Shown here piece by piece: positions 1 to 58,334 of a stretch of 64,000 bases of DNA. The number at the start of each line of letters is the position of its first letter. Position 1 is the stretch's first letter. The stretch is taken from positions 18,910,001-18,974,000 of the forward strand of contig JAQFVV010000005.1 of NCBI GenBank assembly GCA_028023455.1, in the 5' to 3' direction. Source of the DNA: Epiperipatus broadwayi (Eukaryota > Animalia > Onychophora). Position numbers and translations under genes: made by a program. Below the pieces are notes generated by a model. The model was not told the origin of the DNA, searched no databases, and worked only from the letters and a program-made list of their open reading frames with translations.

Positions 1-105
1 AGTAATCAATGGATGCCAGAAGGCTTGTGCATAAAATCCATATCTAGTGCCTACTCATCCAATATCCCCAGACAGGTTTCTGGCTTGTGATCATGTGATG
101 TTAAC
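1..105. repeat. Dispersed repeat 'family A' fragment with a decayed hammerhead-like motif on the - strand
   Basis: 1-64 matches the reverse complement of 57790-57853, and TAATCAATGGATGCCAGA is shared with ~718-735. The - strand reads GAAA-CCTG-TC, but the CUGANGA box is degenerate. Confidence 0.45.
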
Positions 106-6360: not shown

Positions 6361-6993
6361 CATTTTTTTTATCTGTGAAAATATTAACTATATTTCTATA
6401 AATTAGTTAATGATTAACATTAACAACTGTAACATATTTAACAAACATCTATATTCAGACAAGAAATAAATTTATGTATCAGGAGTTTATCTCCCTTTTA
6501 TTTCTTTTCTTACTGTGATGAAACCTATTGACATAATCAGAAACAAATGTTGCCTGTAAAAAGAAATCTGCCTACAACTACTTTTTTTTTAATTAATTTT
6601 TTCCAAATTAAGATATTGATCTGCCATATTTCTGAAAACAATTAATGTTATTGATATGTTAAAACTGAAAGCAGAAAGCAGCTGCAAACAACCACTGATA
6701 ACAATCATGCACTTTCTTTTGTACATTGCTGCAATTCTTCAGAGTCAATAATCAAATTTTATTGAAAAATCCCTTAATATTCATACAAAAATGTGGCAAA
6801 AAGTACTATCAAACCACAAATGGTTAAAAAATGAACATTTTCAATTGTCTGATTATAACTCCTAGAAGACACTCTAAAGTCTGTTTTCCAGCAAGTCACT
6901 CAACATAAGTCATTTTGTAAGAAATGAATAGACAAAAGTATTCTGATTTAAATACATTTCAACAAACTTAGAATCATGCACAATAATAATAAT

Positions 6994-8274: not shown

Positions 8275-9625
8275 GACATTTATATAAGATATTACAACAA
8301 AATAAAGAAAGTGGTGAAGTTGGTAATAGTAATATTAATAATAATAAAGAATATTAAACACACAAAGTTAATTAATTTACAATATCTGAAATACATAAAT
8401 AGTTCAAACATATTATTATATCAAATAAAATAAAAATAGTTAAAAACAACAATATAGCAAATAAATACAATGTTAATTTAACAATGGGGAAATAAAAGTT
8501 AATACTATACAGTGAAGGTGAGATAATAAAATCAGATCTGTCTAAAATCTTATGTATTCTTTAAATAAATAAAAAATTAGTTCCCACAATTTTTAGAAGC
8601 ATTGTTATACCAGCTTCTGGGCTAAGCACTTAATATACATTCAATATTAAATATATTAGTTAAATTTTAATACAAAACTAGCAGGTATATATTTATTTAT
8701 GTGTGTGCATATATGGGCAATTTAAATAATATGGAGTACTGAAGTAATGTGAATAAGAATAAGTTCTGGAATAATTTTGTCAAATTATTTAAATTTACAT
8801 ATGTAAAGACAATTAAAAAAAAAGATGAAGTACATACATGAAGTCTAAGAAATTAGATAATAGACATTTTGTGTAACTTAAAAATATCAAATGAAAGATT
8901 GACTTATAGTACAAAAATATTCTTACTGTGATTGTATTTGTTTGTACATATATATATATATCATTAAAAACCAGTCAACCCTTAAGATAATCCCAATATC
9001 AATAACAATCAACAATTTCAATCTGTTTTCAAGGTAAACCGGTGGAATATATATATATAATAATGATATCCATTCTAAGCTTAAAGGTTATGAATGAAAA
9101 TATATATACTATATACCAAAACTAAACCTTAAGCCTTCTTAAGTTTATATATCGATCTACATTTGAAAATGATGAATTCTATACATTAGCCAACTATTCA
9201 AAATCAGAAATCTATTTGCATTACCACCTTGTAGCCATTTAAACTTGCATAATTGGTTAGAGTTGTAACAGAAAGATCACCAGTAACTAAAGGGAAAGGT
9301 TAATATATTGTAAAAACAGTATGCAATTATACTGTCAAAATAGTATGCCAATTATAAAGAACAATGAATCTTTCTATTCTTTCTAAACTTCTTAAATATT
9401 TATCTGTTATTATTATTATTGAACAATGTATGAATGGCTGGAAATTTACAATTGCAAATTACATAAAAGATTTGAATTATAATTTGTATAATTTTGTTAC
9501 TAATCATTCAGAATGTAAGTGATATAATCTATCAATTAAAAAATTAAATGAAATTATTACTTAATGCAAATCTTAATAAATTATTTAAAATTAAAACCTA
9601 TGGAACATGGCTTGAGATATTATTA

Positions 9626-10174: not shown

Positions 10175-13100
10175 TATAGTGTTTATACACTGAATAAGTA
10201 ATGAAATTTCAATAACAGCAAAATACTCCAGAAAACTAAAGTAAAATGGTTTAGAAAATTGATTGATAACAGAGATATAAAAAAAACATTTGTGGAAAGA
10301 AAAATATTAAAAATGTAGAGTACTTTAGTAATTATAAAGTTTTGTTACAGACACACTGAAAGGTATGGAAGAGCAAGATGAAGAACTGATTAGAGAAAAG
10401 ATAAAACAACCTAAAATAGAATATCCAGAAAATGATACTAATTAAATTCACGGCAAAGGAATTTAATCAAGTAGGAGAAACAAATATGGGGGAAATGGAG
10501 ACTATATAAACTCAGATATTGCAGGAGTTAAATGCTTTTTTACTGCTCAGCGGTTGTAAATTTGGAGTCTAGTATCTGGTCTCATCTGTAGCAAGTTGTC
10601 ATGTACCAGCGAGGTAGAAAACTCAGAGACTTAGATCTGAATGTTCAGAAATCTGACTAATTTTAAAACAGATCATCCTGATCTTTTTTGTTTTGCATCA
10701 GGATTTAATATCAGGAAACTTGGTAAAATATTTAGCAGAAGTTGAAAGAGCTATGTCAGAACAAAGAACTGTGATTAGGGAAGTACATTTAAGAGTGATT
10801 TTTAAATTATTTAGAACTTTGGGGGGTACATGTGTAAGTGCAAATAATCAAATGTTGATATATTTGAAGAGATCAATAAATATCATTTTTCTAAGATAGT
10901 CTCATATATTTTTTGAGAGTGTTTCTTAGTCAAGTTGTAGGGAAATACATCACAATAAAATGGCAGTCAGAAATTCAACCCGAGTGATAAGGAAAATAAT
11001 ATTAAAGTGGAAAAGTAAGAATAGTGCAGTCAAGTTTTGATTTTGTAAGCAATTGTAACATCTCATACTGCAATCGAAGGTTAAAATGACTATAAATCAA
11101 GCAAATATCTAAATATTCGATATTGATAATGCATGGGAATGACCTTTATATATAACACAGCTTGAATATTTTTTCACGCTTAATATCATAAGCAAAAATA
11201 GTATGAAGGTAACTGCTATGCTGTGTTTGGCAGGGAGGAAAGTAATAGAAATTATTAAGTTATTTGATGGATTATAACTGTGACAGTGATATATGAGAAG
11301 GTACTGAAAAATTTAACAAAACATTTTAGCCCATGGCTGTCTAAACATATTTCCAGATTGGCACTACTAAATACAAAACAGGCAAAAGGAGATAAAATTA
11401 AGGATTTCGAAATAGTGTTATGTCAGCTAGCAAAACATTGTCAATATAGTAAACAGGTATTGTTGGATCAGTTGTTATGGAGAATGACAGACAAAAGATT
11501 AAGGTAGACTTTATTGACTGAAACAGAGTTGTCATATGAATCAGCAATTAAAAAAAGGATGGCATATGAATTAATAATTGAGCAAGCCATCACATTTAAA
11601 AGTAAATCAGAAGATGTCAGAACATTAGTTTTATAAAATTGATAAAAATATGCTGCCGAGAAATTATAAATCAAATAGTGAAACAAAACCAACAAGGAAA
11701 TGTTTTTGTTGCAGTAAAACGGGATATTTCATGAAGAATTGCAAAGGGCGATGAGAAAGCTGCTTTAATTGCGAAAATAGAGGTCATTTGGCAACAATTT
11801 GCAAATAAAACCAAGACAAAGGAGAAGCAAGATAAAAGAGCCAAAACCAAACAGAGGGAAAAAAGCAATAAGAAGTGAATATAATATGACATTACATGGA
11901 CAAAAGCAATATATGCTAATAACTAAAATATTTAGCACAAAACTTGAAATGGAGATTGAGAACAGTTTGGATATTTCACTGATATCCAAAAGCTAATGGG
12001 AGGAAATAGTAGAAAATTATAAAGAGGTTAAAATGAAAATGGCTGATATCAAAGTTAAAGATGTAAGCAATAACTCATTAATTGTAGTTGGAATGGTAAA
12101 TGTTCCAGTTGCATACAGAGGCCAAGTACACTATTTTTCAATTTATATTGCAAAAAGACAACTAAGTCCCATAATCGGTAGAGATTGATTTAAGAAGTTA
12201 GGGATTAAGGTTTCCATTGTTAAAAACACTTCCATCCAACAGGAAATGTTAAACATGTATCCAGAGTTATTCATGAAAGAGTTAGAATTAATAAAAGCAA
12301 ACACGGTAGAAGTAGAATTAAGTGAAAAAATAAACAGCCAATGGTTTGTAAGCCATGGAAAGTTTCATTGGCTCACTCACAAGAATGTTGAAGAGAAGTT
12401 AAAGACATTGGTGTATAGAGATGTGTTAACCCCAGTACAAGATGCACAATGGCCAAGCCTATAGTGGTGATAAGTAAATTTAATGGTAAAATCAGAATGT
12501 GCCAAGATTACTGAGTGACAGTATAAAGGTGCTTATCTGGTACCTAACATTAGAGGTTTTAGTGAGTTTCATCAAATTAAAGTAACAGAGAAATCATCAA
12601 AAATCTTAATGTTAATCATACCATTTGGTCTGTTCAAATGTAATTACCTACCATTTGGTGTTACTACAGTGCCCACTATTTTTCAGGCAAAGTTAAACTT
12701 ATTGTTACAAGGGTTTAAAGGAGTAACACCATACTACAGTGGTATTTTGATAACAGCAACATCAACAGATTTGTTAAGATCGAGAATTTTTGAAATTTTG
12801 CGAGAAAGAAAGTAGGGCAGAGGTTAGGGTAAACCTTGAAAAATGTGTATGGGAAACTCAAGAGTTAAAATTTCTGGGACATAGCATTTCAGATAAAAGA
12901 AAATATCCTTTAAGTGGCAAAGTCAGAGCTGTGAGAAATACTGAAAGGCCAAAGAATGTCAAGCAGCTTCTGCCATTTAGGGCTATTAAATTTTTTCAAA
13001 CCATTTTTAAAGAACAAGACTAGGATTGCAAAACTGTTATATGAATTACTGCGCAAAGGGTTAAAGATGGGCTAAAGAGTTTTTATTATCAGATATGCTG

Positions 13101-16100
13101 GTGATGAATTTTGATAGTGGGAGGAAGGTTAGGATTACTATAGATGTATTAGAGTAGGAAATAGGGGTGGTGTTAGCTCACCCTATTGATAATAGTCAGC
13201 ATCTGCTGGTATATGCTTCTAGAACATTGTAAAAAGCAGAGTGGAACTACAATCAAATTGATGGGGAAGTACTGGCAATTTCTCATAGTTAAGAATTATT
13301 GTCAGTTTTTGTTTGGGCATGGTTTTAAAATTATTACAGATCCTAAGCCTCTGCTGGGAATTTTAGGTAATGACCAGGCAGCGCCTGAGCATTTAAGTCT
13401 GCGAATGTTATAATGGCAGGAATTTGTTAGTCATACAATTACACATTAAAATATAAATGAGGTAAAGAACATATCACATGCAGACATGTTGTCAAGATTT
13501 CCATACAATCAAAAGCTAGACAATAGGGATGTTTAGGTTAATTATTGTTGTATCCGCCAGTCTGACTGTGCCAATGTTATATCTGCAAGTATGTCTGTGC
13601 GATCAGCAAATAACTATGTTCAATTCCCACGATGTTCTCTTGCAACGAATGCTCTGCTGTGGATGCTCTCCAACGAATGGTCTGCAATGAATGCTCTGAA
13701 TACACTCTGTATTCTCTGCAACAGATGCTCTCCAACGAATGGTCTGCACCGAATGCTCTGCAAACGGGCGCTCTCCAACAAAGGGTCTGCAATGAATGCT
13801 CTCCAATGAATGGTCTGCAAATGGATGCTCTCCAACGAATGGTCTGCAACAAGACTATTTCTACAGATCGCTAAAATTCAATTCCCATGATGTTCTTTCA
13901 GGCTGGCTGATACAAAAATGGTTCACAATGGGCATACCTTAGCCCCAGTCCAGTTTAGCTGTACACGAACTCTACTCTTCGTAGTAAGCACTGTGACTGA
14001 TCTTAAGCTCCTCACAGCTTCTGTCTCTGCAACAGTCTACTTCACTTGAAAAACGCTGGAAACTCAACTCTTTATTCAACTGCTATCCAGACGGTTTCCT
14101 CAGGCTGTGGTCTCCTTCAGCTATACCCATGAACTACATTTCCACTGGGCGCTGGACATTAACCGCAAGCACTGACGCTAGATATCTCCTACTGAAATTG
14201 AACAGTAACTCTACTGTAGATGCACTCAATACTGTCTGCTACTCCAATACTGCATAGTTCTTACCTAGTCTTCTTATCGCGCTCTGATAACTGAGGAATT
14301 TAATTAAGGCATTGACGTAATGGCGATCGACAATTCCAAGAAATATTTGCTGATTGCAAATATTTCTGGATAAGAGACCATACCTTATTGGACAATGAAT
14401 TGATTGTTGCTATTATCAGAAAGCGATAAGAAGACTGGGTAAGAACTACGCAGTATTGGAGTAGCGGACAGTATTGAGTGCATCTACAGTAGAGTTACTG
14501 TTCAATTCCAGTAGGAGATATCTAGCGTCAGTGCTTGCGGTTAATGTCCAGCGCCCAGCAGAAATGTAGTTCATGGGTATAGCTGAAGGAGACCACATCC
14601 TGAGGAAACCATCTGGATAGCAGCTGAATAAAGAGTTGAGTTTCCAGCGGTTTTAGTGAAGTAGACTGTTGCAGAGACAGAAGCTGTAAGGAGCTTAAGG
14701 TCAGTCACAGTGCATACTATGAAGAGTTTGTGTACAGCTAAACTGGACTGGGGCTAAGATATGCCCATTGTGAACCATTTTTGTAGCAGCCAGCCTGAAA
14801 GAACATCATGGAAATTGAATTTTAGCAAACTGTAGAAAGACTCGTTGCCGAGCATTCGTTGGAGAGCATCCGTTTGCAGAGCATTTGTTGGAGAGCATTC
14901 GTTGCAGACCATTCGTTGGAGAGCATTTGTGGCAGAGCATTCGTTGGAGAGCATCCGTTGCAGAGCATTCGGTGCAGACCATTCTTGGAGAGCATCAGTG
15001 GCAGAGCATTCGTTAGAGAGCATCCGTTGCAGAGAATACAGAGTGGATTGATAGCATAACTCACAAATTTGTAAACAGACCAAGTGTGGATAGGAAAAAA
15101 AAGTATGAGGTTTTGATGAACTGGATTAAGAAGAGCTGCTTAAAACTAGACCTAGCTAGGTGGCAGTGGGATTTTGGTCAAATAAAGAGCAGTTAGGGGA
15201 TGCATAGAAATGGAAAATAGAGTTCTTATACCGCCTGCAGGGAGGGAGAAAGTTTTAAAACTTTTACATGAAGACATGAAGGGCATCCAAGCATAGTGGG
15301 TGAGAAAGCTTTGGCACATAGCTATATCTGGTGGCTGCAAATTAATGAAGATATTGAAAACTATGTTAAATATTGCTCAGAAATGAATTACCAGTGAATG
15401 TTTTGCATCCTGGCCAAAGGCAACAAAAGCATGGGAGAATGTGCATATTTATCATACTAATTCTATTAATGGAAAAATTTTATTGATAATAATTGGCACT
15501 TTTTCCAGATGGATTAAATGCCACATAGTGAAAAATACTAGTGCCCAAAAACAATTAATGTTTGAAGATGGTTTGTTCTATAAATGGTTTTCTGGAAGTT
15601 ATAATGTCTGATAACAAGACAAGTTTTACCTGGGAGGAATTACTCCAGTTTTAAATACTTATTGGATACATCATATGTGAATACCCTATATATCAACTGG
15701 AATCAAATGGATTAGTTGAGAAGGGGTACAGCAAATAAAGTGAAGTTTAAAATAACTTAGAAATGTATGATGCTTTACAAACATTTATGCTATACCAACA
15801 TTCAATGCCATCTGCAGTGACCAATTGTCAATGTTGCATCCCAACACACAAAGAGTGTTCCAAATAAGAAGTCGTGAAAGACATTTGGAATTAGTGAGCT
15901 TGTATGGGTGAAGGATATAATACAAAAGAAAATGGATCAGTGGAATAATAGACAAAATATTCTCAAATCAAATACATGTGGTTAGTGGGCTAAATGGTTT
16001 ACAATACAGACATCATGTGAATCATATGAGAAAAAAGAGCTAGAGGAATTACGCTTGGAAATATTACAGGTTGCAGGAACTCAGAGTTATGAAAGAAGCA

Positions 16101-18121: not shown

Positions 18122-21100
18122 ATGTCGATAGGGCTAGCTAGCATCGCAGAATTCGACATAGGTAGTCTGCATGAATGGCCGTATTATGTAATGCAGTTGC
18201 AAAATTTTTTCAAATTGAATTTAATTTGTGAAAATGAAAAGAAAGTAGCCGCATTTTTCTGTCTATCAGGGAGAAAGGTTATTGAAATAGCAAATAAACT
18301 TTTTCAGGGACAAATAACAGATCTAATTAGTTACGACGAGTTAGTTAATAAGTTAACAGAATATTTCAGCCCTAAGCCATCATTATATGTAGCCAGATTA
18401 AACCTTCGGAAACGAAAACAGGAAAGAAACGAATCCATTAAAGAGTATGATATCGCTCTACATCAACTAGCTAAAAATTGCGATTATGGCAATTTTGTAG
18501 ACCAGATCTTAATAGATCAACTACTTTGGGGAATTTGTGATGAGAGATTAAGACAGTCTTTATTGTCAGAAGTAAAATTAATGTACGATAGTGCAATCCA
18601 AAAAGGGATTGTATACGAATCCGTAATAGACCAAGTAAGAAAATTTTCTAAAAAAGAAGAAACTAGTAGAATAGAGATTTATAAAATTAACAAATATGAA
18701 AAAAAAGATTTTAAAACTGATAATAAGTTTCTAGTTGAATGTTTTGCTTGCGGTAAAAAAGGCCATTTGGCAAAAGAATGTAGATTTAGAAAGGAACAAT
18801 GCTATAATTGCAGTGGGAAGGGCCACATAGCAAATGTATATAAAAAAACGCAGAGAAAAATGAGTAGTAGAAAAGATTTTAAAATTAAGAAAAATAGTAT
18901 TAAAAATAATAATGGAAAGAATAACCAAGATCAGTTGTTTTTGCAAATTTTAATGTTTCAGAAGAAAATTAAAATGGAAATAGATAGTGGGTCCGGGATT
19001 TCGTTAATTTCTAAAAAGTTGTGGAATAAAATAGTTATAGATAATCCCGGGATAGAATTACAAAAAGTATCATTAAAAATTAAAGACGTAAATGGAAATC
19101 CCATTAAAATAGTAGGGAAAGTTAATGCAAAAATAACTCATAGCAAAAGGAATTACGAACTTCCAGTATATGTAGTACAAAAAGATATTACTCCGTTAAT
19201 AGGTCGTGATTGGTTTGATAAGTTGGGGATAAAATTTTCAATAGTTAAAAAGATTTCAGTCGAGAATGAAATGTTAGAAAAATACCCAAAATTATTCACA
19301 GAGGAATTGGGGTTGATGGATACAAAACCGATTGAATTAAATCTAAGTGATAATGCAAAACCTTGTATTTGTAGACCCAGAAAAATACCATTCGCACAAC
19401 GTAAAATGGCTGAGGAAAAAATTAATAAGTTAGTGGAAACGGGGGTTTTGTCACCTATAGAAGAGTCGGAATGGGCTACACCAGTGGTAATATTAAACAA
19501 ACCAGACGGTAGAATTAGAATATGCGGAGATTATAGAACAATGGTGAATAAGTATTTAAAGAAGGGTTCATATCCCATTCCCAATATTAGAAAAATATTA
19601 AGTAGCTTATCGAGTGCAAAATATTTTGCAAAGTTAGATTTGAATGCAGCCTATCACCAAATTAGAGTTACTGAAAATACAGCTCGTGTATTAACGTTGA
19701 CAACTCAGTTTGGGCTTTTTAAATGTAACCGTTTACCATTCGGAATAACATCGGCTCCGAATATTTTCCAAGCAAAATTAAACGGTATATTAAATGGTAT
19801 TGAAAGTGTGCACCCATATTACGATGACATTTTAATTGCAGAATCAATGGCTGGTAGGTTAGCTGAAAAAATTAAAGTTGTCTGTAAAAAGCTATGTAAT
19901 GCAGGGGTTAAACTTAACTTGAAAAAATGTGTATGGGAAACGCAAGAAATAAAGTTTCTTGGGCATTTAATTACTAACAGAGGTAAAAAACCTTTACCTG
20001 AAAAAATAAGTGCAGTTAAAAATATAGACTCACCTAAGAGTGTTAAACAGCTGCAAGCTTTTTTAGGACTCATAAATTTTTTTGAACCTTTTTTAAAAAA
20101 TAAAGCCATGATAGCAGCACCACTGTACAAGTTGTTGAGGAAAGGTCAAAAGTGGACATGGAACGAAAGGCACGAACAAGCATTTAAGGCAGTTAAACAA
20201 TTATTAACATCAGATTCTTTTTTAGTGCATTTTGATCTAAATAAAGAAGTAGTATTAACAACCGATGGATCTCATTTCGGAATAGGAGCAGTATTAGCTC
20301 ATAAAACTAATGGTTTAGAGAGACCCATAGCATACGCATCAAGAACGTTGTCAAATGCTGAACGTAATTATAGCCAGCTAGATAAAGAAGTGCTAGCAAT
20401 AATGTGGGCCATTAAAAAATTTCACCAATATATTTATGGAAGAGATTTTACAATAATAACGGATCACAAGCCATTAATAAGCATTATAGGGAAAGATTGC
20501 CCAATACCGGAACATTTAAGCCCGAGAATGATCAGATGGGTAAATATATTAAATAGTTATGATTTCAGTTTGGAATTCAGAAAAGGCAAATGTATAGCAT
20601 ATGCAGATGCTCTATCCAGAGTACCGGAAAATAACAAGGAGAGTGAAATAGAAGTTGAAGTGAACTTCATAGATACTTTAAATTCTAAAATGATAAATAG
20701 TAAAAACATTAAGGATTGGACTGAAAAGGAAGAAAGTTATAGAATATTATGTAAGTGGATTAAACATGGATGGCCAGAAAAGAAACCCGGAACAGTTATC
20801 AACCGCATTCTGGATGAACAGAGACAAACTATCAATCTGTAAAGGGTGTATAGTGATGGGAGATCGAATAGTGGTCCCTCCTGAAGGTAGATGGAGAGTC
20901 TTGAAAATAATTCACCAAGGACACCCAGGGATAGTGAGAGCAAAGGCTCTAGCCAGAAGTTATGTGTGGTGGCCAAAAATTAATGTGGATATTGAGAACT
21001 TTATAAATAAATGAGAGATATGCCAAGCAGAAAGGACTTTACCAGTAAAACAATATGTGTCGGCGGCCAAAGCCATCGAATCCGTGGCAACGTATACATA

Positions 21101-21991
21101 TTGACCATTTTGGACCTATAGAGGGAAAAACATATTTTATATTAATAGATGCAACTTCTAGATGGATAGAATGCCATCAAGCAAAATCTACAAGTAGTGA
21201 GGAAACAATAAAAATACTAAAGGAAATATTTTTAACACACGGTTTCCCGGAGGCGATTGTATCAGATAATGGACCAAGTTTTGTGAGTAATGAATTTAAA
21301 CAGGGCATGGACTCATGGAATATAAATCATATATTGACACCGCCGTATCACCCCGAGTCGAATGGGTTAGCCGCGAGAGCAGTGCGTCAAGCAAAGCAAT
21401 TTATTAAAAAGAGTACTAGTAGGGATACACAGAAGATTGTAAAAGAATTCATGTGGCATCAAAACATTACACCGTCAACAACGACAAGAAAATCTGCTGC
21501 GGAAATATTATTTGGAAGAAAAATAAGAACTGGACTTGATTTCTTAAAACCAAAGAAATTCGAACAATGGGAACCAGAAGAAACAATAGAAAAATTTGGT
21601 ATTGGAGACAACGTAATGTGCAGACATGTTAAGGAAAAAATGGATAAATGGTAGGATAGAAAAAAAATTGTCAAAGCAAATTTACATAATTAAAGGTGAA
21701 GATAACCAAATCTATAGACGTCATAAAAATCATATTAGAAGACGGTATGAAAGTGAACAAAATACGTACGATGGGCAACAACAAATAGAGATAGCAGACG
21801 AACCTAAAGATATAAAACAGAATGAGAGAAATACGAATATTAAAGCACACGAGGAAATCGTTATAGAAGAGACAACGGAAATCGATAACAGTTTTCCTCA
21901 AGAGGAAAAAAAATCACCGAGACCAGTGCGTTTTAAAAGAAAACCAGCGAATTTGGAAGATTTTGTAACATCGGAAAAACAAAACTTCTAA
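18122..21991 (+). pseudogene. gag-pol polyprotein: open through gag, PR, RT and RH; integrase broken by frameshifts (~20788, ~21063, ~21640) and a TGA at 21012-21014
   Basis: CCHC knuckle CFACGKKGHLAKEC; protease IDSG; RT RICGDYR, LPFG, YYDD; RNase H TTDGS, DHKPL; IN HQGHPG..C..C, RIHIDH, IVSDNG, SNGLA. Confidence 0.92.
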
Positions 21992-25505: not shown

Positions 25506-25745
25506 TCATAAAAGTTCATTGAGAGGGAGGGCTGGCAATATGGAATCCACACAATTCACCCAAAAATTGGCACAAGATGCATGATACTGGCGTCCACCAT
25601 ATGTTAATTTGTTATTGTCTTGTTCACGGTCAAATGCTTTACTCCGAGAATCAACATTCAGCAAACAAACTCCACATGCTTTATGAGCAATATCAGGATC
25701 AGATTTGAGCACTCCTGCTGAGTAATCCAGAGAACCTGTTTCAGG
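25506..25745 (-). CDS. SYNRG: Synergin gamma, last coding exon
   Basis: PETGSLDYSAGVL...KACGVCLLNVDSRS...KLTYGGRQYHASCANFWVNCV...LL* matches the conserved SYNRG C-terminus as I recall it. Preceded by a TTGCAG acceptor, phase 0. Confidence 0.92.
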   Translation of the reverse strand, partial: PETGSLDYSAGVLKSDPDIAHKACGVCLLNVDSRSKAFDREQDNNKLTYGGRQYHASCANFWVNCVDSILPALPLNELL

Positions 25746-26089
25746 CTGCAATATCAAAAAATCAACAAGTCAATAATGATAATATTCTATTGTTAATAAC
25801 TAATAAATTAAAACAATTTCATTAAAAAACTGAAATGATGTATAAAATATTAATATCTGTTTTATTTTTGTTTTTCTGCATTTGATTTTATTTATTTATT
25901 TTCCAAATTTATTATTTATTTGTTATCTTTGAAAGATTGTAAAATATATTTTACAAAAGTTTTTTACAATACTCATGGATATATTACAATAACAGATTAT
26001 ATATATAAATTACATGAAAACAGCCAAAACCTATCCAAACTATGTAGCTATCAAATAATAAAATGTATATACATATATACAATATATAA

Positions 26090-32647: not shown

Positions 32648-35600
32648 TGATATGTATGCGGATGCTCAAGTGCACATACATATAAAGATATAATTTATAG
32701 TGAAATAAATAATTAGTTATAAAAAAATTATAGAATTTTAAAAGCCTGATCTTTTAAAATAAGAAATAAAAGTTATTTATAACTTTGTAAGATGAGAAAA
32801 AAGATTATTTTCTAAAAGTAAAAGCAGTTAAATTAATGAGAGAAGAATGCAGTATTAAAATGAGATATTGAACAATTAAAGGGATTCGAGTTTGGATTTC
32901 CTTCATGATAATAAGTTGTAAGCTAAAAATAACTCATTAAAGTTGGATATATAATGGTTTAAATTCTTATATCCAGCATGTAGGCAGTGAAAGGAATAAT
33001 CACTTGAATGGCTGGGAATATGAGCCAATCAGTTTTAAGAAATGAAACAATGAAAGGACTCAGCGCAAATTTGATCAAAAAAAGGACACTTGATTCTTGG
33101 AGCTTCACCTGTGCACATGGACTTATAAGCAGGTGCAGAACATTGCCCGAATGCTCAGGGACTTTAAATGTGGAGAGTTGGCCTCTGAACATGTGAACAT
33201 CCAGCTAGGACTCATACAGCTCATATTGATCTTAATAATTATTTTTGTACACCTACAGGTATGTATATAAGTAATGTATATAGATGTATATATAATTTGT
33301 AATGTTTAGTAGCAATTACAAAGATTTTTTATTATTAAATTGCATTTAATCTCAATCTAATAGTGTCGAGTCATTACTGGGGAATTATTATTGTTAAATT
33401 AGTCTGGGAATGTTTAAGCTTACAGACAAGATGTCCGGCAGTATAATAGTGTGGAACATATCAATTGGCACAGTCGCATCATCTTAATACAAACATCATC
33501 AATCTGTACTCATAACAATGGCACAGCTTGCAGTTCAAATAGGGAAAGTTAAACAAAACCCAGTCAGCATATTATAAAGGCAGTTCAAAGTTTGAAACTG
33601 TAAGAGGATTTACAGTAATTTCAAACTCCTCATATTTGCATTCAGATCAAAGTGCGCACTCAGTTACTTGATTCAAATTAGGAATCAAAAGTAAAAGGTT
33701 AGATTTACGCATAAAGATTGGTTTAAAATGCAGTCAGTTATAAGTGAGTTCAACATCACTAATGTGAGTAATTAGCCCTTATATGTCTAACATATAGAGA
33801 AAGATCTCTTCGTAAATAAAATTGAAGATTATAAATTACAAAAATGCACAAATTTTATATTTTTCTGGGAATGGGGTAATTGAAATTGTGAATAGGCTTG
33901 GTGCACCCTTCTGTCCAGAAGAAAGCTCATGTAATCAATTTAAAAAACATTTGTTTAATTATTTTAACCCCTCCCCTCTAAATATGTTGCCAGGTTAATT
34001 TCCACGACTGCTATCAGGGTAGGGAGGAAAGCATTAAAAATATCGATTGGTCACTTGGGAATTTAGCAAAGAATTGTGTATATGATTCATTTTTAGATGA
34101 GACCTTCCTGGAACAGTTCTTTAGAGAAATAAAGAGTTTTAACTTATGTCAACAATTACTGTTGGTCACAAATTTAGATCACAGTGAGGTCATAAAGCAT
34201 AGTATAACTTATGAACTCATCCTGGAGCAATCAAAAAAAATATGCAGAGTTCAATTGGAGTGGAAAAAGCAAACAGAAGTTTGTAAAACAATTAATCCAA
34301 TTGAAAACAAAGTCACTAACAGTAAAAAGAGAAAAATTGATAACAGCAAACATTTATTTACATGCTTTTGCTGCGGGAAAAATGGCCATAAGGCCAGTAA
34401 CTGTTATTATAGATATGAATGCTGCAACAAAAGAGGGCACAGGGAAAATATGTGCAAAAAAAGAGAATAGTGTAGCCAGAAATGATATTAATAGTAGTAA
34501 CCATATAATAGAGGGTCAGGGGAAAGCACTTTATTAAGGTTAAAAATAGAGCAACAACAGATAATAAAATAATGATCAAAATTAAAATATTCGATCAGCC
34601 TATTGGCATGAAGGTTGACGGTGGAAGCAGTGTATTACTGATACCACTCTGCTATTGGTATACTGTTACTTCCAAATGTAAGAGAATACCCATTATATAA
34701 AAAACTTACCTTAAGGCAATAGACATGAGCGGTAATGCCATCAGAATAAAGAAGACATAGTCAAAGTGCCGATATGTGGAAGTAAATGCAAAATTATAGT
34801 TCTACTACTTTATATAGTACATGCTCTAATCAACACCATATTAGGATGAGAGTGGTTCAGTGAAATTGGAGTAAAAATAATAATTACTAAAAAAATTAAT
34901 AGCCCCAAGAGAAAATTTTTTTACAGGGGGATCAAGATGAATTCAGGTAAAGTAGAGATACCCATACAGAAAAAACAATTCCAGTCCCCCAGTACTCAAC
35001 AAAAGTATATCAGAGAAGGTTCATGGTGACTAGAAACATAATAAAACTATGCATAAAGATGTACTGAAATCAATATGATAAAATCATAACTCATTCGAAA
35101 GAGGAGGGCGACAGTTACCATTGGAATATTAAACAGATTAAAGAAGGTTGGCCGAAGCAACACCCCAGTTTCCTCTACAAAGAATTATGAAATGCTCATA
35201 AGCAGCTGTTGGTTAGTCAAAGGCACCTTATGAGAGGTGATTGTATGCTGATACCAGTCAAGGACAGACAGCATATAGTAAAGTGGCTGCATGATAGTCA
35301 GCAGGACATCAGAAGAACAAAATCTCTCACCCTTAGTGGTGTCTGATGGCCAGACATTAATGAAGACATGAGAGAAAAAAAGAATGATTAATTTACAAAC
35401 AAGTACAGAGAATGGAGTTGGAACCTAATTCTTAACAGCATGCTAAAAGGAAGATAAACCCTCCCAGGTATCTTAATGACTTGGGGGGAGTAATGATATG
35501 TATGTGGAGGCTCAAATGCCCATACATATAAAGATATAATTAAATTTATAAATGAAATAAATAATAAGTTATAAAGAAATTATAGAATTTTAAAAGTCTG

Positions 35601-49015: not shown

Positions 49016-50504
49016 ATATCTTAAATTTACCATTTCAAGCAAAATTTTTAAAAAAATCCAAGCCTCAGTGTTTTTGCAACATTTGAAATTCTTGTAGCAA
49101 TTTTGGAAAATTTGCAGTTTTCTATTAAGTTTTAAAAACAGCACAAAGATAATTTTAAGAAGAAAAAGGGGGTAATACTATTGTATACATGTGAATAAAT
49201 TAGTTAAAATAGGATCAGTAAAGCAATATTAATATTAGTATACACATAATGATAAAACTATTTACAGTAATAACAAAAACTTCTAATGCAATAATTAAAT
49301 CTGAATGTGCATGTATATTAAATATAAAGCAATACTATTTTAAAATATTCAAATAAAGTTATTTTAAATTTGAAATAAAATCTCAATTATTGTAAGAATA
49401 GTAAATAAAATAAAAATCATTTATCGTAATACCTATAATATAAATATTTGTTCTAACATTGTGATTTGTATATTTAATTTTATTAAAGTATAATATTTTA
49501 TTTAAATATGTTTTAAAATGTTATGTGCATGTCTTTCAACTGCCCTAATGAAGAAATAAAACATCTGAAAAATATTCATCATGGTAAAATGCATAAAAAA
49601 AATTTTTTTAATGTTTTTGAAATAGAAAATTATAAGCCATTTTGCCAATACCAATATGTCAATTGTCATCTGCTGCTGTAGTTTATAGCCAATATCTATA
49701 AAATTGGTACACACCTGCATTTTGAATATTTATTTATTTTAACCCAGTTTAAAAAATTAATGGAATTACTCTTTGTAAACAATTTTCTTATAAATGCTAA
49801 AATTAGGGAATTACTAATTATTCACTCCACACATATACAAATGAAGAAAAATAACTTATTGTGATTTTCTTAAAGTTTACCACATAAAATGGATTGAGTC
49901 AAAAGATAAAATTTTGTCGTCATTTATTGTTCTACCAGATATAATTCTTTTCCATCCTCTGAGATGTTATAATTATAGTGCCAAAGGTTTTCAATCATTT
50001 TTTTAAAAAAACATTCTAAAAGATTTCAGAAATAAAAATAATTGGAACTCTTAAATATTTTAAGTGGATTTTAGGTTATAGATTTTTTTTTTACTTATTA
50101 TTATATATATATTGCTTTATAAAGTTCCCATAGGAGGAAAGCTCAAAAAACAAAAAAAACAAGAGGTTTTATATATTATTATAATTTCAATATCATGACT
50201 TAATACATGTGCATTTTGTTTTGACAAGATTATTAATATTAATTATTATTTAACCATAATTTAAATATAGTAGTTAATGTTTCATATGACTTATTCGTCA
50301 TTAAAGATGTCTATGGTGTTACTATTACAGCTCATAAGATATCTAAAGAATAACAGTAAATGATTATATAATTTAAAATATTTTATAAGAATTACCCCTT
50401 TTTTATCAATATAGGTATATTAAAGACTGTATAAAGATTTATATAATTAATTACTTTTGTGGCAATAAGATTGACATATAAATAATATTGTTGTTCAGTA
50501 GAGG

Positions 50505-50925
50505 AAAGCTTCTAGCAACATGCATTTTTTATTGATAAATGTTAGCGTACAAGTGAATTATTTCAATTCAAAACTACTTGATGTTCTAACTTATATTTAT
50601 GAAAATGATTTGACCATTTTGTTCCCAAATTTGAGCATATTATTAAGAATATTAATAACTTCTCCTACATGTGTGCCTAGTGAAGACAGATTGTTATCAA
50701 AATTAAAAATTATAAAAAAAAAAGCTGGTAAATTTGTCAGTGATGATGATATTGTATATAAATTTAGGTCTATAAAAGCTCGGAAAGTAAATTTATAATT
50801 ATGTAATAATAATTTTTTCCATTATTATCATGTAGAATTTGTTTTATTTTATTTTATTTTTTTGAGAGAGGGCACCAATTATTGTTTTGCATAAGGTCGC
50901 TGACAACCCTTCCTCCAGCCTTAGT
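50505..50925 (+). mobile_element. hAT DNA transposon 3' fragment (dimerisation domain plus subterminal region)
   Basis: IYENDLTILFPNLSILLRILITSP...EDRLLSKLKIIK resembles the hAT C-terminal FPN...T.AS.ERSFSKLK motif. Confidence 0.7.
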
Positions 50926-51180
50926 TATGATCAATGGTGGATCCAAGTATTATTTGGTAGTTGGTGGCTTCTCCTTTTTCTTAGCCAGCTATAATGACAG
51001 TAAGATATGGAATGAAGCATGAATAAGAACAAGAATCAAGAAGAATCATTTCAAAAAAAAATATCTTGGTTATATATATATAAATAACTACAACCATTAA
51101 ATGTCTGTATTTTTAAATTATATAATAATAATTCAAACAAATATATTTAACACAGTATTCAAAATTAAATAATCTATTCT

Positions 51181-51231
51181 TTACCAGAAGTACTTTCAAT
51201 TGTTTCACTGACAATCTTTATCAACTGTTAA
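51181..51231 (-). ncRNA. Same variant hammerhead, 3' pLTR of the - array
   Basis: Reverse complement of 54881-54931. Confidence 0.7.
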
Positions 51232-51280
51232 TACAAACGTACAAAAAATAAAAACTTGCATTACCCATCATTCAATCTAT

Positions 51281-53644
51281 TCAAATTTCCCACAATTCTG
51301 TTGTCTTTATATTAGCCGATTGTTTATTCATCAAACCACCTCTATTCCTAGATATCATCATTGCCTCTTTAATTTTACGTTTTTCACTACACCTTTCAAT
51401 TTGAATAATTTTTATATCTCTATTATTAAATTTAAAACCATAATTACATGTTTTATTATGATCAAATATAATTGATGGAGTATTCATATTTACTGAAGAT
51501 ATATTTTCTTTCTGTACACGTTTATATAATGTCTTATGATCATTATATCGTTTTTGTAATGTACATTTGGATTCCCCTATATATTTTATTCCACAACCAC
51601 ATTCCAACATATATATAACAGAACTTAATTCAAACTTAGAAATCTTGGCTTTGGAGTTATTTATCATATCATTTATATTATTTGAAGAGAAAAAAGAAAT
51701 TCTACACAAACCACTAAAAAGTTTATAAATTAATTTAGCTTGTTGATTAGATATAAAAGGAATAGAAATCCATTTATCACTTTTTAATTTACTTAATATT
51801 TTCTTATTATTACTCTTATTTTGATTATATTTTGTAATTGTATTATAAATAATATTCCTTCCATAACCAACATTCAACATATCAGTAATATATACATTAA
51901 TATTTTCAATTTTATCACTAATAAATTTGCACAAATAATCATTTCTAAATAAAAATGACTTCAAACCAGCTAATTTATGACTCATATGAACTTTAGAATT
52001 ATATGGAATATAACCCCTAATTTCCACAGGCTTTAAAATCATATTATAATCAAACACATTATTATTTCTTTTAATAAATATATCTAAAAACTTTATAGAA
52101 TCTTCCTTCTCTTCATTTAACACCCATTTTACATTATTAATCATATTTAACTCATTAAACAAATTAACTATTATTTCATTATGTGCACATATAAATACAT
52201 CATCAACATATCTACAATATACTTTAATTCCTTTATATTTTATCTGAGACAATATCTTAACCTCATAATTAGAAATAAAAAAATTACAAAGCTGTGATAC
52301 CACCGGAAGACCCATTGGCCAACCAAAATTCATTTTATAAAAGCAATCATTAAACCTAACATATATATTATCATTCACAAATCTTAATATTTTAACAATA
52401 AAATTCCTAATATTATTATCTATAGATTTTAAAAACAAAGCTCTTTCAATAATCTCTATTGATTCAATACGATTAATTGAACCATACATTTCAGATATGT
52501 CAAGTGTACACATAACATCATTATTATCAATTTTTATATTTTTAATCCTATTAATAAAATCAAATGATGATGAAATCGTATAATCTCCAAATCCAAGCAC
52601 ATCTTGCATTATTTTTTCAATATATCTACAAGCATTATAATAAAAAACACCACCAAAATCAACAATTACTCTTAATGGATAACAATTTTTATGCAATTTT
52701 ATATTTGCAAAGATTCTTGGAAACACTGCAGACGACGGATATAAACTGTAATATGTCTTTGCATCAATAACTTTTTTCTTTTTAGCAGTCATTAAAATGT
52801 CATTAATAAATTTCATTCTATATGTATCAATATTATTTAATTCACTTTTTTCAAAACAAAGCTTCTTCATTTGATCCATAATTTTCATATTATATTCATC
52901 CTGTTTCATTAGGCACATCCGTAAACCCTTGTCCTCCTTCAAACAAATTAATTTATTACTTTTTAAAAAATTTTTAAATTCATAAATTTGTTTTAACCAA
53001 ACATTATCATTTTGCTTATCAAATGTTTTATTTTTTATTTCATTAATTATTTTATTCCTATCATTTAAATCACAATTTATAACACCAAACGAATATTCAA
53101 TCGCAGCATTTAATTCAATACTAGAATCTTTCCAACCTCCACCGACGTATTTAGATCCAAAATTTAAAATATAACGCTGATTAAAATTCAAATCAACTCC
53201 AGAGATATTCACATAGTTTTGATCACTAAAATTTCTTGGAAACTTTTTATTATACAAATGTTCAATTTTCCTATTAAATTTATCCATCATTTTTGAATGC
53301 AAATTATTAAAACGTATTTGACAAATCTGTTTATATTCATATAAATAATCAATATTATTAACGTAAATAAAATGATTTAATGTTCTTAAATACTTTCTAT
53401 TATAAAACAGCAAATACTTACATTGGTCAATTATATTACGAAGTATTATATTTTTTAGATCATCCATAGATCTCACACTCAATTTACATAACTTATTTAT
53501 TTTAATACAACAACAGTTAGGAAACACTTTAAAAATCCGACAGGAATACAAAAACTTTATTCTGCACTTTAACGTAATAACTTTAACCGTTACTTTCCGC
53601 CATTCCTTTAAAAGCCAAATTCCATTTAATTGCTTTAAATCCAT
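51281..53644 (-). CDS. PLE reverse transcriptase + C-terminal GIY-YIG endonuclease, 787 aa
   Basis: KEDKG, IKLHK..PLRVIV, LDISEMY, GWPMGLP, RYVDD, IKFLDI, VIYMLECGCGIKYIGES, RYNDH, RKIKEAMMI. Confidence 0.93.
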   Translation of the reverse strand: MDLKQLNGIWLLKEWRKVTVKVITLKCRIKFLYSCRIFKVFPNCCCIKINKLCKLSVRSMDDLKNIILRNIIDQCKYLLFYNRKYLRTLNHFIYVNNIDYLYEYKQICQIRFNNLHSKMMDKFNRKIEHLYNKKFPRNFSDQNYVNISGVDLNFNQRYILNFGSKYVGGGWKDSSIELNAAIEYSFGVINCDLNDRNKIINEIKNKTFDKQNDNVWLKQIYEFKNFLKSNKLICLKEDKGLRMCLMKQDEYNMKIMDQMKKLCFEKSELNNIDTYRMKFINDILMTAKKKKVIDAKTYYSLYPSSAVFPRIFANIKLHKNCYPLRVIVDFGGVFYYNACRYIEKIMQDVLGFGDYTISSSFDFINRIKNIKIDNNDVMCTLDISEMYGSINRIESIEIIERALFLKSIDNNIRNFIVKILRFVNDNIYVRFNDCFYKMNFGWPMGLPVVSQLCNFFISNYEVKILSQIKYKGIKVYCRYVDDVFICAHNEIIVNLFNELNMINNVKWVLNEEKEDSIKFLDIFIKRNNNVFDYNMILKPVEIRGYIPYNSKVHMSHKLAGLKSFLFRNDYLCKFISDKIENINVYITDMLNVGYGRNIIYNTITKYNQNKSNNKKILSKLKSDKWISIPFISNQQAKLIYKLFSGLCRISFFSSNNINDMINNSKAKISKFELSSVIYMLECGCGIKYIGESKCTLQKRYNDHKTLYKRVQKENISSVNMNTPSIIFDHNKTCNYGFKFNNRDIKIIQIERCSEKRKIKEAMMISRNRGGLMNKQSANIKTTELWEI

Positions 53645-54115
53645 TTCATATATAAATAACTACAACCATTAAATGTCTGTATTTTTAAATTATATAATAA
53701 TAATTCAAACAAATATATTTAACACAGTATTCAAAATTAAATAATATATTCTTTACCAGAAGTACTTTCAATTGTTTCACTGACAATCTTTATCAACTGT
53801 TAATACAAACGTACAAAAAATAAAAACTTGCATTACCCATCATTCAATCTATTCAAATTTCCCACAATTCTGTTGTCTTTATATTAGCCGATTGTTTATT
53901 CATCAAACCACCTCTATTCCTAGATATCATCATTGCCTCTTTAATTTTACGTTTTTCACTACACCTTTCAATTTGAATAATTTTTATATCTCTATTATTA
54001 AATTTAAAACCATAATTACATGTTTTATTATGATCAAATATAATTGATGAGTATTCATATTTACTGAAGATATATTTTCTTTCTTACACTTTATATAATT
54101 CTTATGATCATTATA
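53645..54115 (-). repeat. 5' pseudo-LTR of the - array (shorter ORF 3' end plus UTR)
   Basis: Copy of ~51073-51545 at offset 2572. Confidence 0.9.
53753..53803 (-). ncRNA. Same variant hammerhead, 5' pLTR of the - array
   Basis: Reverse complement of 54881-54931. Confidence 0.7.
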
Positions 54116-54116
54116 T

Positions 54117-55039
54117 AATCTAAAGTTCATATGAGTCATAAATTAGCGGTGAAGCATTTTTATTTAGAAATGATTATTTGTGCAAATTTATTAGTGATAA
54201 AATTGAAAATATTAATGTATATATTACTGATATGTTGAATGTTGGTTATGGAAGGAATATTATTTATAATACAATTACAAAATATAATCAAAATAAGAGT
54301 AATAATAAGAAAATATTAAGTAAATTAAAAAGTGATAAATGGATTTCTATTCCTTTTATATCTAATCAACAAGCTAAATTAATTTATAAACTTTTTAGTG
54401 GTTTGTGTAGAATTTCTTTTTTCTCTTCAAATAATATAAATGATATGATAAATAACTCCAAAGCCAAGATTTCTAAGTTTGAATTAAGTTCTGTTATATA
54501 TATGTTGGAATGTGGTTGTGGAATAAAATATATAGGGGAATCCAAATGTACATTACAAAAACGATATAATGATCATAAGACATTATATAAACGTGTACAG
54601 AAAGAAAATATATCTTCAGTAAATATGAATACTCCATCAATTATATTTGATCATAATAAAACATGTAATTATGGTTTTAAATTTAATAATAGAGATATAA
54701 AAATTATTCAAATTGAAAGGTGTAGTGAAAAACGTAAAATTAAAGAGGCAATGATGATATCTAGGAATAGAGGTGGTTTGATGAATAAACAATCGGCTAA
54801 TATAAAGACAACAGAATTGTGGGAAATTTGAATAGATTGAATGATGGGTAATGCAAGTTTTTATTTTTTGTACGTTTGTATTAACAGTTGATAAAGATTG
54901 TCAGTGAAACAATTGAAAGTACTTCTGGTAAAGAATATATTATTTAATTTTGAATACTGTGTTAAATATATTTGTTTGAATTATTATTATATAATTTAAA
55001 AATACAGACATTTAATGGTTGTAGTTATTTATATATGAA
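54117..55039 (+). repeat. 5' pseudo-LTR of the + array (duplicated ORF 3' end plus UTR)
   Basis: Copy of ~56690-57570; contains the 217-aa partial ORF 54178-54831. Confidence 0.9.
54881..54931 (+). ncRNA. Putative variant hammerhead ribozyme (U3-A8 core) in the PLE pLTR
   Basis: TTAACAG-TTGATAA-A-GATTGT-cagtgaa-ACAATT-GAAA-GTAC-TT-CTGGTAA. Stem I 6 of 7 pairs, stem II 6 bp, palindromic AAGTACTT stem III. Confidence 0.7.
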
Positions 55040-57403
55040 ATGGATTTAAAGCAATTAAATGGAATTTGGCTTTTAAAGGAATGGCGGAAAGTAACGGTTA
55101 AAGTTATTACGTTAAAGTGCAGAATAAAGTTTTTGTATTCCTGTCGGATTTTTAAAGTGTTTCCTAACTGTTGTTGTATTAAAATAAATAAGTTATGTAA
55201 ATTGAGTGTGAGATCTATGGATGATCTAAAAAATATAATACTTCGTAATATAATTGACCAATGTAAGTATTTGCTGTTTTATAATAGAAAGTATTTAAGA
55301 ACATTAAATCATTTTATTTACGTTAATAATATTGATTATTTATATGAATATAAACAGATTTGTCAAATACGTTTTAATAATTTGCATTCAAAAATGATGG
55401 ATAAATTTAATAGGAAAATTGAACATTTGTATAATAAAAAGTTTCCAAGAAATTTTAGTGATCAAAACTATGTGAATATCTCTGGAGTTGATTTGAATTT
55501 TAATCAGCGTTATATTTTAAATTTTGGATCTAAATACGTCGGTGGAGGTTGGAAAGATTCTAGTATTGAATTAAATGCTGCGATTGAATATTCGTTTGGT
55601 GTTATAAATTGTGATTTAAATGATAGGAATAAAATAATTAATGAAATAAAAAATAAAACATTTGATAAGCAAAATGATAATGTTTGGTTAAAACAAATTT
55701 ATGAATTTAAAAATTTTTTAAAAAGTAATAAATTAATTTGTTTGAAGGAGGACAAGGGTTTACGGATGTGCCTAATGAAACAGGATGAATATAATATGAA
55801 AATTATGGATCAAATGAAGAAGCTTTGTTTTGAAAAAAGTGAATTAAATAATATTGATACATATAGAATGAAATTTATTAATGACATTTTAATGACTGCT
55901 AAAAAGAAAAAAGTTATTGATGCAAAGACATATTACAGTTTATATCCGTCGTCTGCAGTGTTTCCAAGAATCTTTGCAAATATAAAATTGCATAAAAATT
56001 GTTATCCATTAAGAGTAATTGTTGATTTTGGTGGTGTTTTTTATTATAATGCTTGTAGATATATTGAAAAAATAATGCAAGATGTGCTTGGATTTGGAGA
56101 TTATACGATTTCATCATCATTTGATTTTATTAATAGGATTAAAAATATAAAAATTGATAATAATGATGTTATGTGTACACTTGACATATCTGAAATGTAT
56201 GGTTCAATTAATCGTATTGAATCAATAGAGATTATTGAAAGAGCTTTGTTTTTAAAATCTATAGATAATAATATTAGGAATTTTATTGTTAAAATATTAA
56301 GATTTGTGAATGATAATATATATGTTAGGTTTAATGATTGCTTTTATAAAATGAATTTTGGTTGGCCAATGGGTCTTCCGGTGGTATCACAGCTTTGTAA
56401 TTTTTTTATTTCTAATTATGAGGTTAAGATATTGTCTCAGATAAAATATAAAGGAATTAAAGTATATTGTAGATATGTTGATGATGTATTTATATGTGCA
56501 CATAATGAAATAATAGTTAATTTGTTTAATGAGTTAAATATGATTAATAATGTAAAATGGGTGTTAAATGAAGAGAAGGAAGATTCTATAAAGTTTTTAG
56601 ATATATTTATTAAAAGAAATAATAATGTGTTTGATTATAATATGATTTTAAAGCCTGTGGAAATTAGGGGTTATATTCCATATAATTCTAAAGTTCATAT
56701 GAGTCATAAATTAGCTGGTTTGAAGTCATTTTTATTTAGAAATGATTATTTGTGCAAATTTATTAGTGATAAAATTGAAAATATTAATGTATATATTACT
56801 GATATGTTGAATGTTGGTTATGGAAGGAATATTATTTATAATACAATTACAAAATATAATCAAAATAAGAGTAATAATAAGAAAATATTAAGTAAATTAA
56901 AAAGTGATAAATGGATTTCTATTCCTTTTATATCTAATCAACAAGCTAAATTAATTTATAAACTTTTTAGTGGTTTGTGTAGAATTTCTTTTTTCTCTTC
57001 AAATAATATAAATGATATGATAAATAACTCCAAAGCCAAGATTTCTAAGTTTGAATTAAGTTCTGTTATATATATGTTGGAATGTGGTTGTGGAATAAAA
57101 TATATAGGGGAATCCAAATGTACATTACAAAAACGATATAATGATCATAAGACATTATATAAACGTGTACAGAAAGAAAATATATCTTCAGTAAATATGA
57201 ATACTCCATCAATTATATTTGATCATAATAAAACATGTAATTATGGTTTTAAATTTAATAATAGAGATATAAAAATTATTCAAATTGAAAGGTGTAGTGA
57301 AAAACGTAAAATTAAAGAGGCAATGATGATATCTAGGAATAGAGGTGGTTTGATGAATAAACAATCGGCTAATATAAAGACAACAGAATTGTGGGAAATT
57401 TGA
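55040..57403 (+). CDS. PLE reverse transcriptase + GIY-YIG endonuclease, 787 aa (identical protein to 51281-53644)
   Basis: Same motifs; identical translation in the ORF track. Confidence 0.93.
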   Translation: MDLKQLNGIWLLKEWRKVTVKVITLKCRIKFLYSCRIFKVFPNCCCIKINKLCKLSVRSMDDLKNIILRNIIDQCKYLLFYNRKYLRTLNHFIYVNNIDYLYEYKQICQIRFNNLHSKMMDKFNRKIEHLYNKKFPRNFSDQNYVNISGVDLNFNQRYILNFGSKYVGGGWKDSSIELNAAIEYSFGVINCDLNDRNKIINEIKNKTFDKQNDNVWLKQIYEFKNFLKSNKLICLKEDKGLRMCLMKQDEYNMKIMDQMKKLCFEKSELNNIDTYRMKFINDILMTAKKKKVIDAKTYYSLYPSSAVFPRIFANIKLHKNCYPLRVIVDFGGVFYYNACRYIEKIMQDVLGFGDYTISSSFDFINRIKNIKIDNNDVMCTLDISEMYGSINRIESIEIIERALFLKSIDNNIRNFIVKILRFVNDNIYVRFNDCFYKMNFGWPMGLPVVSQLCNFFISNYEVKILSQIKYKGIKVYCRYVDDVFICAHNEIIVNLFNELNMINNVKWVLNEEKEDSIKFLDIFIKRNNNVFDYNMILKPVEIRGYIPYNSKVHMSHKLAGLKSFLFRNDYLCKFISDKIENINVYITDMLNVGYGRNIIYNTITKYNQNKSNNKKILSKLKSDKWISIPFISNQQAKLIYKLFSGLCRISFFSSNNINDMINNSKAKISKFELSSVIYMLECGCGIKYIGESKCTLQKRYNDHKTLYKRVQKENISSVNMNTPSIIFDHNKTCNYGFKFNNRDIKIIQIERCSEKRKIKEAMMISRNRGGLMNKQSANIKTTELWEI

Positions 57404-57452
57404 ATAGATTGAATGATGGGTAATGCAAGTTTTTATTTTTTGTACGTTTGTA

Positions 57453-57503
57453 TTAACAGTTGATAAAGATTGTCAGTGAAACAATTGAAAGTACTTCTGG
57501 TAA
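57453..57503 (+). ncRNA. Same variant hammerhead, 3' pLTR of the + array
   Basis: Identical sequence to 54881-54931. Confidence 0.7.
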
Positions 57504-58334
57504 AGAATATATTATTTAATTTTGAATACTGTGTTAAATATATTTGTTTGAATTATTAATATATATATACTACTGACCTCTTGTTTTTCAATACCTTGAT
57601 GATCTCTTTATTTTACTTAACCTAGGTGACCTCAGTTTATTTTAATTACATTTAATTTTCAAAATACCATAATTATTTAACTGATTGAATTTTTATCTTG
57701 TTTTCAAATTTCTTAGCTCCAAACACAAAACCAGTCTGCTTTTTAATTATCCTATTTTTCATTCTTTTATTACATGAAAACCACTCTTTATATTGGATAA
57801 GTAGGTACTAGATAGGTGTTTTATGCACAAACCTTCCTGCACCCATTGATTACTCTGGCTTGCATGAGTGGTGCTATTTTATGAAGTTTTGCCTCTGTTT
57901 CTTTATTTTATTTACCAAATGTAATTTTTTTAAAATTAAACTTTTAATATCTATTTTCATTAATATTAGTGTAACTAATAGTTGTTTTTGTAATAAACAA
58001 CTTATAAGAACATGGATTAGAACATATTCTTTTAAATAGATTTTTCTAATTCTAAGTTTTAGTCTTTGATAAGAAAAACTGGCTATACTGTTTTAACCTA
58101 CTTTATTATATAGTTTCTTCTAAATTTAATCACTTATAATAAAGTCTATTTATTAAAATAATATTTTTAAATAATAATTCTTTATGAAATTTCAACTTTA
58201 CTTTATAATAAAACCTATTACATTATTTAAACTTATTTTAAAATATTACTTTTAATAAACCCTTATAAAATATCAACTTTATTTCCTAATTTTAAAAATT
58301 TATTCAAAGTTATTTTTATTATATATATATATAT

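Follow-up and report, generated by a model that had tools for sequence, protein, structure and literature searches.

Insertions of Penelope-like elements (PLEs) are partial tandems that form pseudo-LTRs. Many of them also have, at the 5' end, a 5'-truncated copy in inverted orientation, as well as a tail of 30-40 bp confined to one end, and (TA)n is often targeted (Craig et al. 2021, PMC8557442). Among inverted PLE arrangements, head-to-head is the one most frequently observed, palindromes occur at the inverted junctions, and long tandem or inverted arrays have been reported (Arkhipova et al. 2013, PMC3846280). In vitro, a purified PLE protein, predicted to be a homodimer, cuts both target strands and extends them, and reverse transcription begins at two neighboring internal sites that correspond to the tail (Frangieh et al. 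2024, PMC11167929). The Hydra clade, which belongs to the C-terminal endonuclease-positive (EN+) PLEs, is described as carrying DKT in place of DKG, with GxKF/Y not conserved, CCHH absent, and a CxCX5C linker (Craig et al. 2021, PMC8557442).

Here, we analyzed a 64,000-nt stretch of contig JAQFVV010000005.1 from Epiperipatus broadwayi (hereafter, the window), which contains a large palindrome composed of two such arrays. The locus resembles canonical EN+ PLEs (Penelope/Poseidon-type; Arkhipova 2006, Craig et al. 2021, Frangieh et al. 2024) in its partial tandem with pseudo-LTRs, the head-to-head inverted copy at the 5' end, the optional tail, some tens of bases long and found at one end, the AT-rich or (TA)n target, and the microhomology or palindrome at the inverted junction. 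It differs from them in that their inverted partner is a short 5'-truncated stub, whereas here it is a second array of more than one unit with an intact ORF. Further differences lie in the tail (43 nt in the window element, compared with the 30-40 reported), the lack of a canonical hammerhead by Rfam, the second CCHH histidine, which is not conserved in the window protein, and the low identity of that protein to library relatives (only 22-32% for the 150 best listed). The original prediction presented the locus as a departure from the usual short inverted pLTR; this was overstated, since head-to-head is the most frequent inverted PLE layout and long arrays have been reported (PMC3846280, PMC8557442). 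Every feature that it stressed is already described for PLEs, the only unusual point being that the inverted partner exceeds one unit and is coding. Although very complete and young, the locus is an ordinary case of a known PLE insertion architecture, and it represents no new kind of element or mechanism.

Results

Architecture of the inverted repeat

Positions 51076-57558 of the window form a near-perfect inverted repeat of 6.5 kb, whose 2572-bp unit consists of a 2364-nt ORF and a 208-nt spacer (Table 1). The repeat search returned inverted arms at 51119-54049 and 54635-57565, each of 2931 nt and reported as 100% complementary, together with direct repeats of period 2572 inside each arm. Both arms thus have the partial-tandem organization that gives pseudo-LTRs, extending over approximately 1.18 units on the left and 1.33 units on the right. 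A perfect inverted match of 2.9 kb cannot have arisen by chance. Read on its sense strand, the left arm begins with 264 bp of ORF 3' end and continues through the spacer and a full ORF to 198 nt of 3' sequence; the right arm has the same order, with 719 bp of ORF 3' end at its start and 155 nt of 3' sequence at its finish. The ORFs diverge from the center, so that the 5' ends meet in the middle and the outer ends are both 3' ends of the element. Both 787-aa ORFs, 53644..51281 (-) and 55040..57403 (+), are intact and have the same translation. The predicted 6.5-kb palindrome with two full-length, head-to-head PLE ORFs is borne out by the 2931-nt arms and the identical translations, and the measurements given for it were right to within a few bases. 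The copies had also been called identical, which holds for the ORF translations; the arms differ by one SNP at 51174 and by nine lost bases at 54048-54154.

Table 1. Features of the palindromic PLE pair, in window coordinates
Feature	Position	Strand	Remarks
Left (TA)6, microsatellite target remnant	51071..51082	.	51076-51082 could equally start the next unit
43-nt 3' extension ("tail"), left outer end only	51083..51125	-	Matches the internal unit junction up to ...GTTGTAGTTATT
Left-arm outer pseudo-LTR segment (3' UTR)	51126..51280	-	Holds the sole inter-arm substitution, 51174
Left 787-aa ORF, predicted RT and C-terminal GIY-YIG endonuclease	51281..53644	-	Intact
Left-arm 208-nt spacer between tandem units (inner pseudo-LTR core)	53645..53852	-	
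Left-arm 5'-truncated partial copy (ORF 3' end)	53853..54116	-	264 bp
Central junction, palindrome ATTATATAAT	54110..54119	.	4-bp ATAT overlap of the two 5'-truncated copies
Right-arm 5'-truncated partial copy (ORF 3' end)	54113..54831	+	719 bp
Right-arm 208-nt spacer (inner pseudo-LTR core)	54832..55039	+	
Right 787-aa ORF	55040..57403	+	Same as left
Right-arm outer pseudo-LTR segment	57404..57558	+	Tail-less terminus ...GAATTATTA
Right (TA)n target remnant	57559..57569	.	

Encoded protein and its relatives

Pfam returned no significant family for the window's own protein, and a word-based homologue search with it yielded no relatives; these were found only by an exhaustive phmmer search, which recovered 8220 relatives of the window ORF at E<=1e-3, with lengths of about 800 aa. 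The 150 best of them, with the identities of 22-32% mentioned above, were mostly 500-870 aa long. In an alignment of the window ORF with 13 relatives (A1, 14 sequences), Pfam detected RVT_1 in 10 sequences and GIY-YIG in 6. The N-terminal PLE motifs are present, with NFGSKY and EDKG of the window ORF aligned to conserved LGxKF and ADKG columns and the DKG located at residues 238-240. PLR and the reverse transcriptase motifs A to C (YVDD), with the motif A aspartate, were also aligned in A1, as was GWPMG. The C terminus carries a GIY...YIG motif with conserved R, H, and E residues, and the endonuclease residues Y678, C682, C684, Y688, G690, R699, H703, H729, and E760 are invariant across A1. 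Searched against the PDB, the A1 profile matched telomerase reverse transcriptase and other reverse transcriptases, and the nearest Atlas clusters were animal RVT_1/GIY-YIG/HTH_animal/DUF8422 proteins. Judged from its sequence, the window protein combines a divergent reverse transcriptase with a GIY-YIG endonuclease at its C terminus, and the element is an endonuclease-positive PLE. The identification as a PLE made at the outset is supported by the A1 motifs, the RVT_1 and GIY-YIG matches, and the partial-tandem layout.

The element shares with the Hydra clade a unit of less than 3 kb, a single ORF with a C-terminal GIY-YIG, and insertion into (TA)n. Membership in that clade was nevertheless rejected on the DKG and GxKY motifs: the window ORF has DKG (238-240) and GSKY, in contrast to the DKT and the lack of a conserved GxKF/Y that set the clade apart in its description. 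The window ORF also has C682, C684, and H729, whereas CCHH is absent from the clade, and no CxCX5C linker of the Hydra type was seen in it in alignment A1. Regarding the hammerhead of pseudo-LTRs, Rfam detected no hammerhead family at E<=1 over 50500-58200, and the folding of 54860-54945 was no better than that of shuffles. Some PLE clades are without canonical hammerheads, and the hammerhead is not a strictly defining feature.

Outer ends and flanks

The left arm reaches the complete unit end (...GTTGTAGTTATT, base 51083), whereas the right arm ends 43 nt short of the left arm's end (...GAATTATTA, base 57558). A tail is therefore present at one end only, as 43 extra nucleotides at the left, in line with the difference of approximately 50 bp that had been claimed between the outer ends. 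The (TA)n target adjoins both of them (51071-82 and 57559-69); beyond it, the left flank ends in ...TCTTGGT and the right flank begins with CTACTGACC... The tail-less terminus recurs elsewhere, as a contig from another organism's run ends there and continues into (TA)n and a different flank (loose end at 57569 in run X7). The right flank at 57680-57838 was recovered at 100% identity and a depth of approximately 33 in runs X1 and X2. From about 57790 onward, it is a very high-copy repeat and hence only partly unique. Of the unique (TA)n flanks predicted for the insertion, the (TA)n was confirmed at both ends, while the uniqueness did not hold for the right flank from about 57790. The repeat at 57790-57999 had a summed word depth of 4x10^5 to 1x10^6 in X1 and X2 and is 86% similar to window positions 1-65 in inverted orientation.

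Central junction and lost bases

The center is asymmetric, with 264 bp of ORF 3' end on the left and 719 bp on the right, and the breakpoints of the two arms are 451 nt apart in unit coordinates. Where the left and right partial copies overlap, they share ATAT (54113-54116), which is part of a 10-bp palindrome, ATTATATAAT (54110-54119). Both the asymmetry (approximately 260 versus 715 bp) and the ATAT microhomology had been read correctly in the original prediction. Compared with the full copies, the sequence between 54048 and 54154 lacks nine bases, removed by eight deletion events, and shows not a single substitution. On the left side of the center, four G are lost on the plus strand (after 54048, 54084, 54089, and 54099); on the right side, five T are lost (at 54118/9, after 54147, two after 54149, and after 54154). 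When each copy is read in its sense direction, all lost bases are pyrimidines, and the C content of the left deletion zone is only 13%. The deletions are confined to 66 nt on the left and 45 nt on the right of the palindrome center, and approximately 6 kb of sequence around this zone of about 107 bp is perfect, the sole inter-arm substitution lying at 51174 in the left arm.

Natural decay produces mostly substitutions, and it was rejected as the origin of a center that shows deletions only. Deletions without substitutions point instead to a sequencing or consensus defect or to a highly atypical error of synthesis. Most likely, the nine missing bases reflect consensus errors that the assembly made at the palindrome center and not biology; the approximately 105 central bases look like poor-quality assembly sequence with a weak long-read consensus, and the clustered one-base losses show that the center has weaker support than the arms. 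When real inverted repeats are sequenced by nanopore, bases are missed just past the inverted junction (Spealman et al. 2020, PMC7229812), an effect that would be expected to yield the strand-symmetric deletion pattern seen at the center. A chimeric read, or a gap filled from raw long reads, would likewise account for this pattern. The palindrome center is a probable weak spot of the assembly, and its central 105 bases are best treated as unreliable. It is very doubtful that the pyrimidine-only losses are real; they would then be the footprint of error-prone, base-skipping synthesis in the last 40-70 nt of converging cDNAs before pairing, and the locus would provide a natural snapshot of the completion of PLE integration, a step not reconstituted in vitro.

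Junctions and copies in read data

The runs X1 to X4 represent one sample, and their contigs are short. They contain approximately 0.8 of the index words of 53400-54900 and one of the eight index words of 54040-54165. The other seven words were in none of the listed runs; each of them carries a deletion, so their absence says nothing about a junction without deletions. Among the contigs listed for four runs, two of them from the sample that contains the right flank, none bridges 54049-54155 or runs from flank to flank, and a look-up of the exact peptide across the center found none on record. Head-to-head junction contigs of the PLE family were numerous in X1 and X2 (13 listed and 117 more), several of them nearly symmetric; both termini and head-to-head junctions recur in the raw data of the same organism. 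Most family contigs matching a stretch of the window are only 90-95% like the window copy. The family is extremely abundant, above all in its 3' part, the summed word depth being approximately 5x10^3 to 3x10^5 for most of the 200-bp bins within the arms versus about 33 for the unique flank. It is apparently both active and highly abundant in this AT-rich animal genome. In another junction contig (52817 to 54563; also 55867/57135, on opposite strands), the breakpoint lies within one base of the 5' end of the left copy. Unit position 57135/57136, the breakpoint that the two junctions have in common, may be a preferred stop or switch point.

Discussion

Our data are probably explained by a single recent event in which an active family of Penelope-like retrotransposons inserted into a (TA)n microsatellite, through target-primed reverse transcription that used both strands of the cleaved target. 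The anatomy, the protein family, and the recurrence of the termini and head-to-head junctions come from the present analysis, and the order of insertion events, which we infer from published in vitro work, would be as follows. The GIY-YIG endonuclease of the element would cut both target strands, and each target 3' end would prime cDNA synthesis on a multimeric RNA, the transcript of a tandem array. Initiation at the distal start site on one side would leave the 43-nt tail, and use of the proximal site on the other side would leave none. The two cDNAs would extend toward each other over 1.18 and 1.33 unit lengths, and their 3' ends could pair via the self-complementary ATAT before fill-in. This would leave two intact ORFs pointing away from each other, each preceded by a pseudo-LTR of its own. 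The identity of the arms over 2.9 kb, compared with the 90-95% likeness of most family contigs, suggests that both came from one source at one time. If the locus is real, it would offer a clean and very recent natural case in agreement with the in vitro findings of both-strand priming and of two alternative start sites, with a tail end and a tail-less end within a single insertion.

A single insertion by template switching or twin priming had been suggested for this locus; the single insertion, primed from both sides, is supported by our data, and classical twin priming is not. In the twin priming of L1, associated with the names of Ostertag and Kazazian (2001), the second primer reportedly anneals internally on the same RNA, and one outer end is said to be the 3' end of the element. 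That process resembles the present case in using both target strands as primers and in a microhomology join that leads to an inversion. In contrast to it, the window arms overlap in content and both outer ends are canonical 3' termini of the element, which rules out an L1-type product and argues for two templates or two start events from normal start sites and not for internal priming of one RNA.

A rather unlikely alternative is that the palindrome is absent from the genome and that the assembly joined two separate (TA)n insertions via a chimeric inverted read or a gap fill with raw long reads. The loss of nine bases without substitutions within 107 bp, next to 6 kb of perfect sequence, is typical of a few error-prone reads and would fit such a misjoin, although nanopore sequencing of real inverted repeats is also documented to miss bases beyond the inverted junction (PMC7229812). 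Similarly, the junction-specific index words were absent from runs that hold the flank at 100% identity, but each missing word of the center overlaps a deletion and is uninformative on a junction without deletions. Repeat-induced misjoins are plausible in view of the extreme abundance of the family, and PLE structures are known to upset assemblies (Craig et al. 2021, PMC8557442). On the other hand, the layout is exactly that of real PLE insertions, including a tail at one end and no tail at the other, and many other head-to-head junctions of the family are found in raw-read contigs. The simplest form of artefact, a fold-back read, was rejected because it would give mirror-image flanks and a symmetric center, whereas the flanks here are unlike and the breakpoints are offset by 451 nt.

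It is improbable that the two arms were inserted successively, with a first partial-tandem copy entering (TA)n and a later copy from the same master entering at its 5' edge in the opposite orientation. PLE endonucleases reportedly favor AT-rich DNA as well as the pseudo-LTRs of their own elements, some (TA)n is left next to any first insertion, and the sole SNP (51174) is in the left arm only, all of which would suit two events. However, the arms are identical over 2931 nt in a family most of whose contigs are only 90-95% like the window copy, an ATAT overlap takes the place of any (TA)n or filler between the 5' ends, and both ORFs would need to have stayed intact through two events. The arm identity and the lack of a target remnant between the 5' ends make two successive insertions less likely than a single insertion. 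Self-priming (snap-back), by which one cDNA or template primes itself and is then copied in the backward direction, has been proposed for inverted PLE junctions with palindromes (PMC3846280) and would suit the 10-bp palindrome and the several family junction contigs that are nearly symmetric fold-backs (e.g., 53735 to 54953, offset by 4 nt in unit coordinates), but it is highly improbable here, where the offset is 451 nt in place of the symmetric hairpin expected and the differing outer termini (tail versus none) point to two separate initiation events.

Genomic neighborhood

The PLE pair lies in a transposon-rich neighborhood. Host exons were sought on both sides of the insertion to link the flanks, and no usable gene was found among what are mostly transposon remnants. 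Stop-free stretches at 12189-13410, 20697-21651, and 33982-34467 resemble remnants of LTR-retrotransposon pol, integrase, and gag (CCHC). Two other palindromes of approximately 1.2-1.3 kb, with arms that are 71-95% complementary, occur in the window at 13711-14926 and 6983-8285, the former within a GC-richer (0.45) block of repeated short units. An 87-codon stop-free stretch at 25509-25769 (-), with a GC content of 0.40 and ending in ...GRQYHASCANFWVNCVDSILPALPLNELL, could be a host exon.
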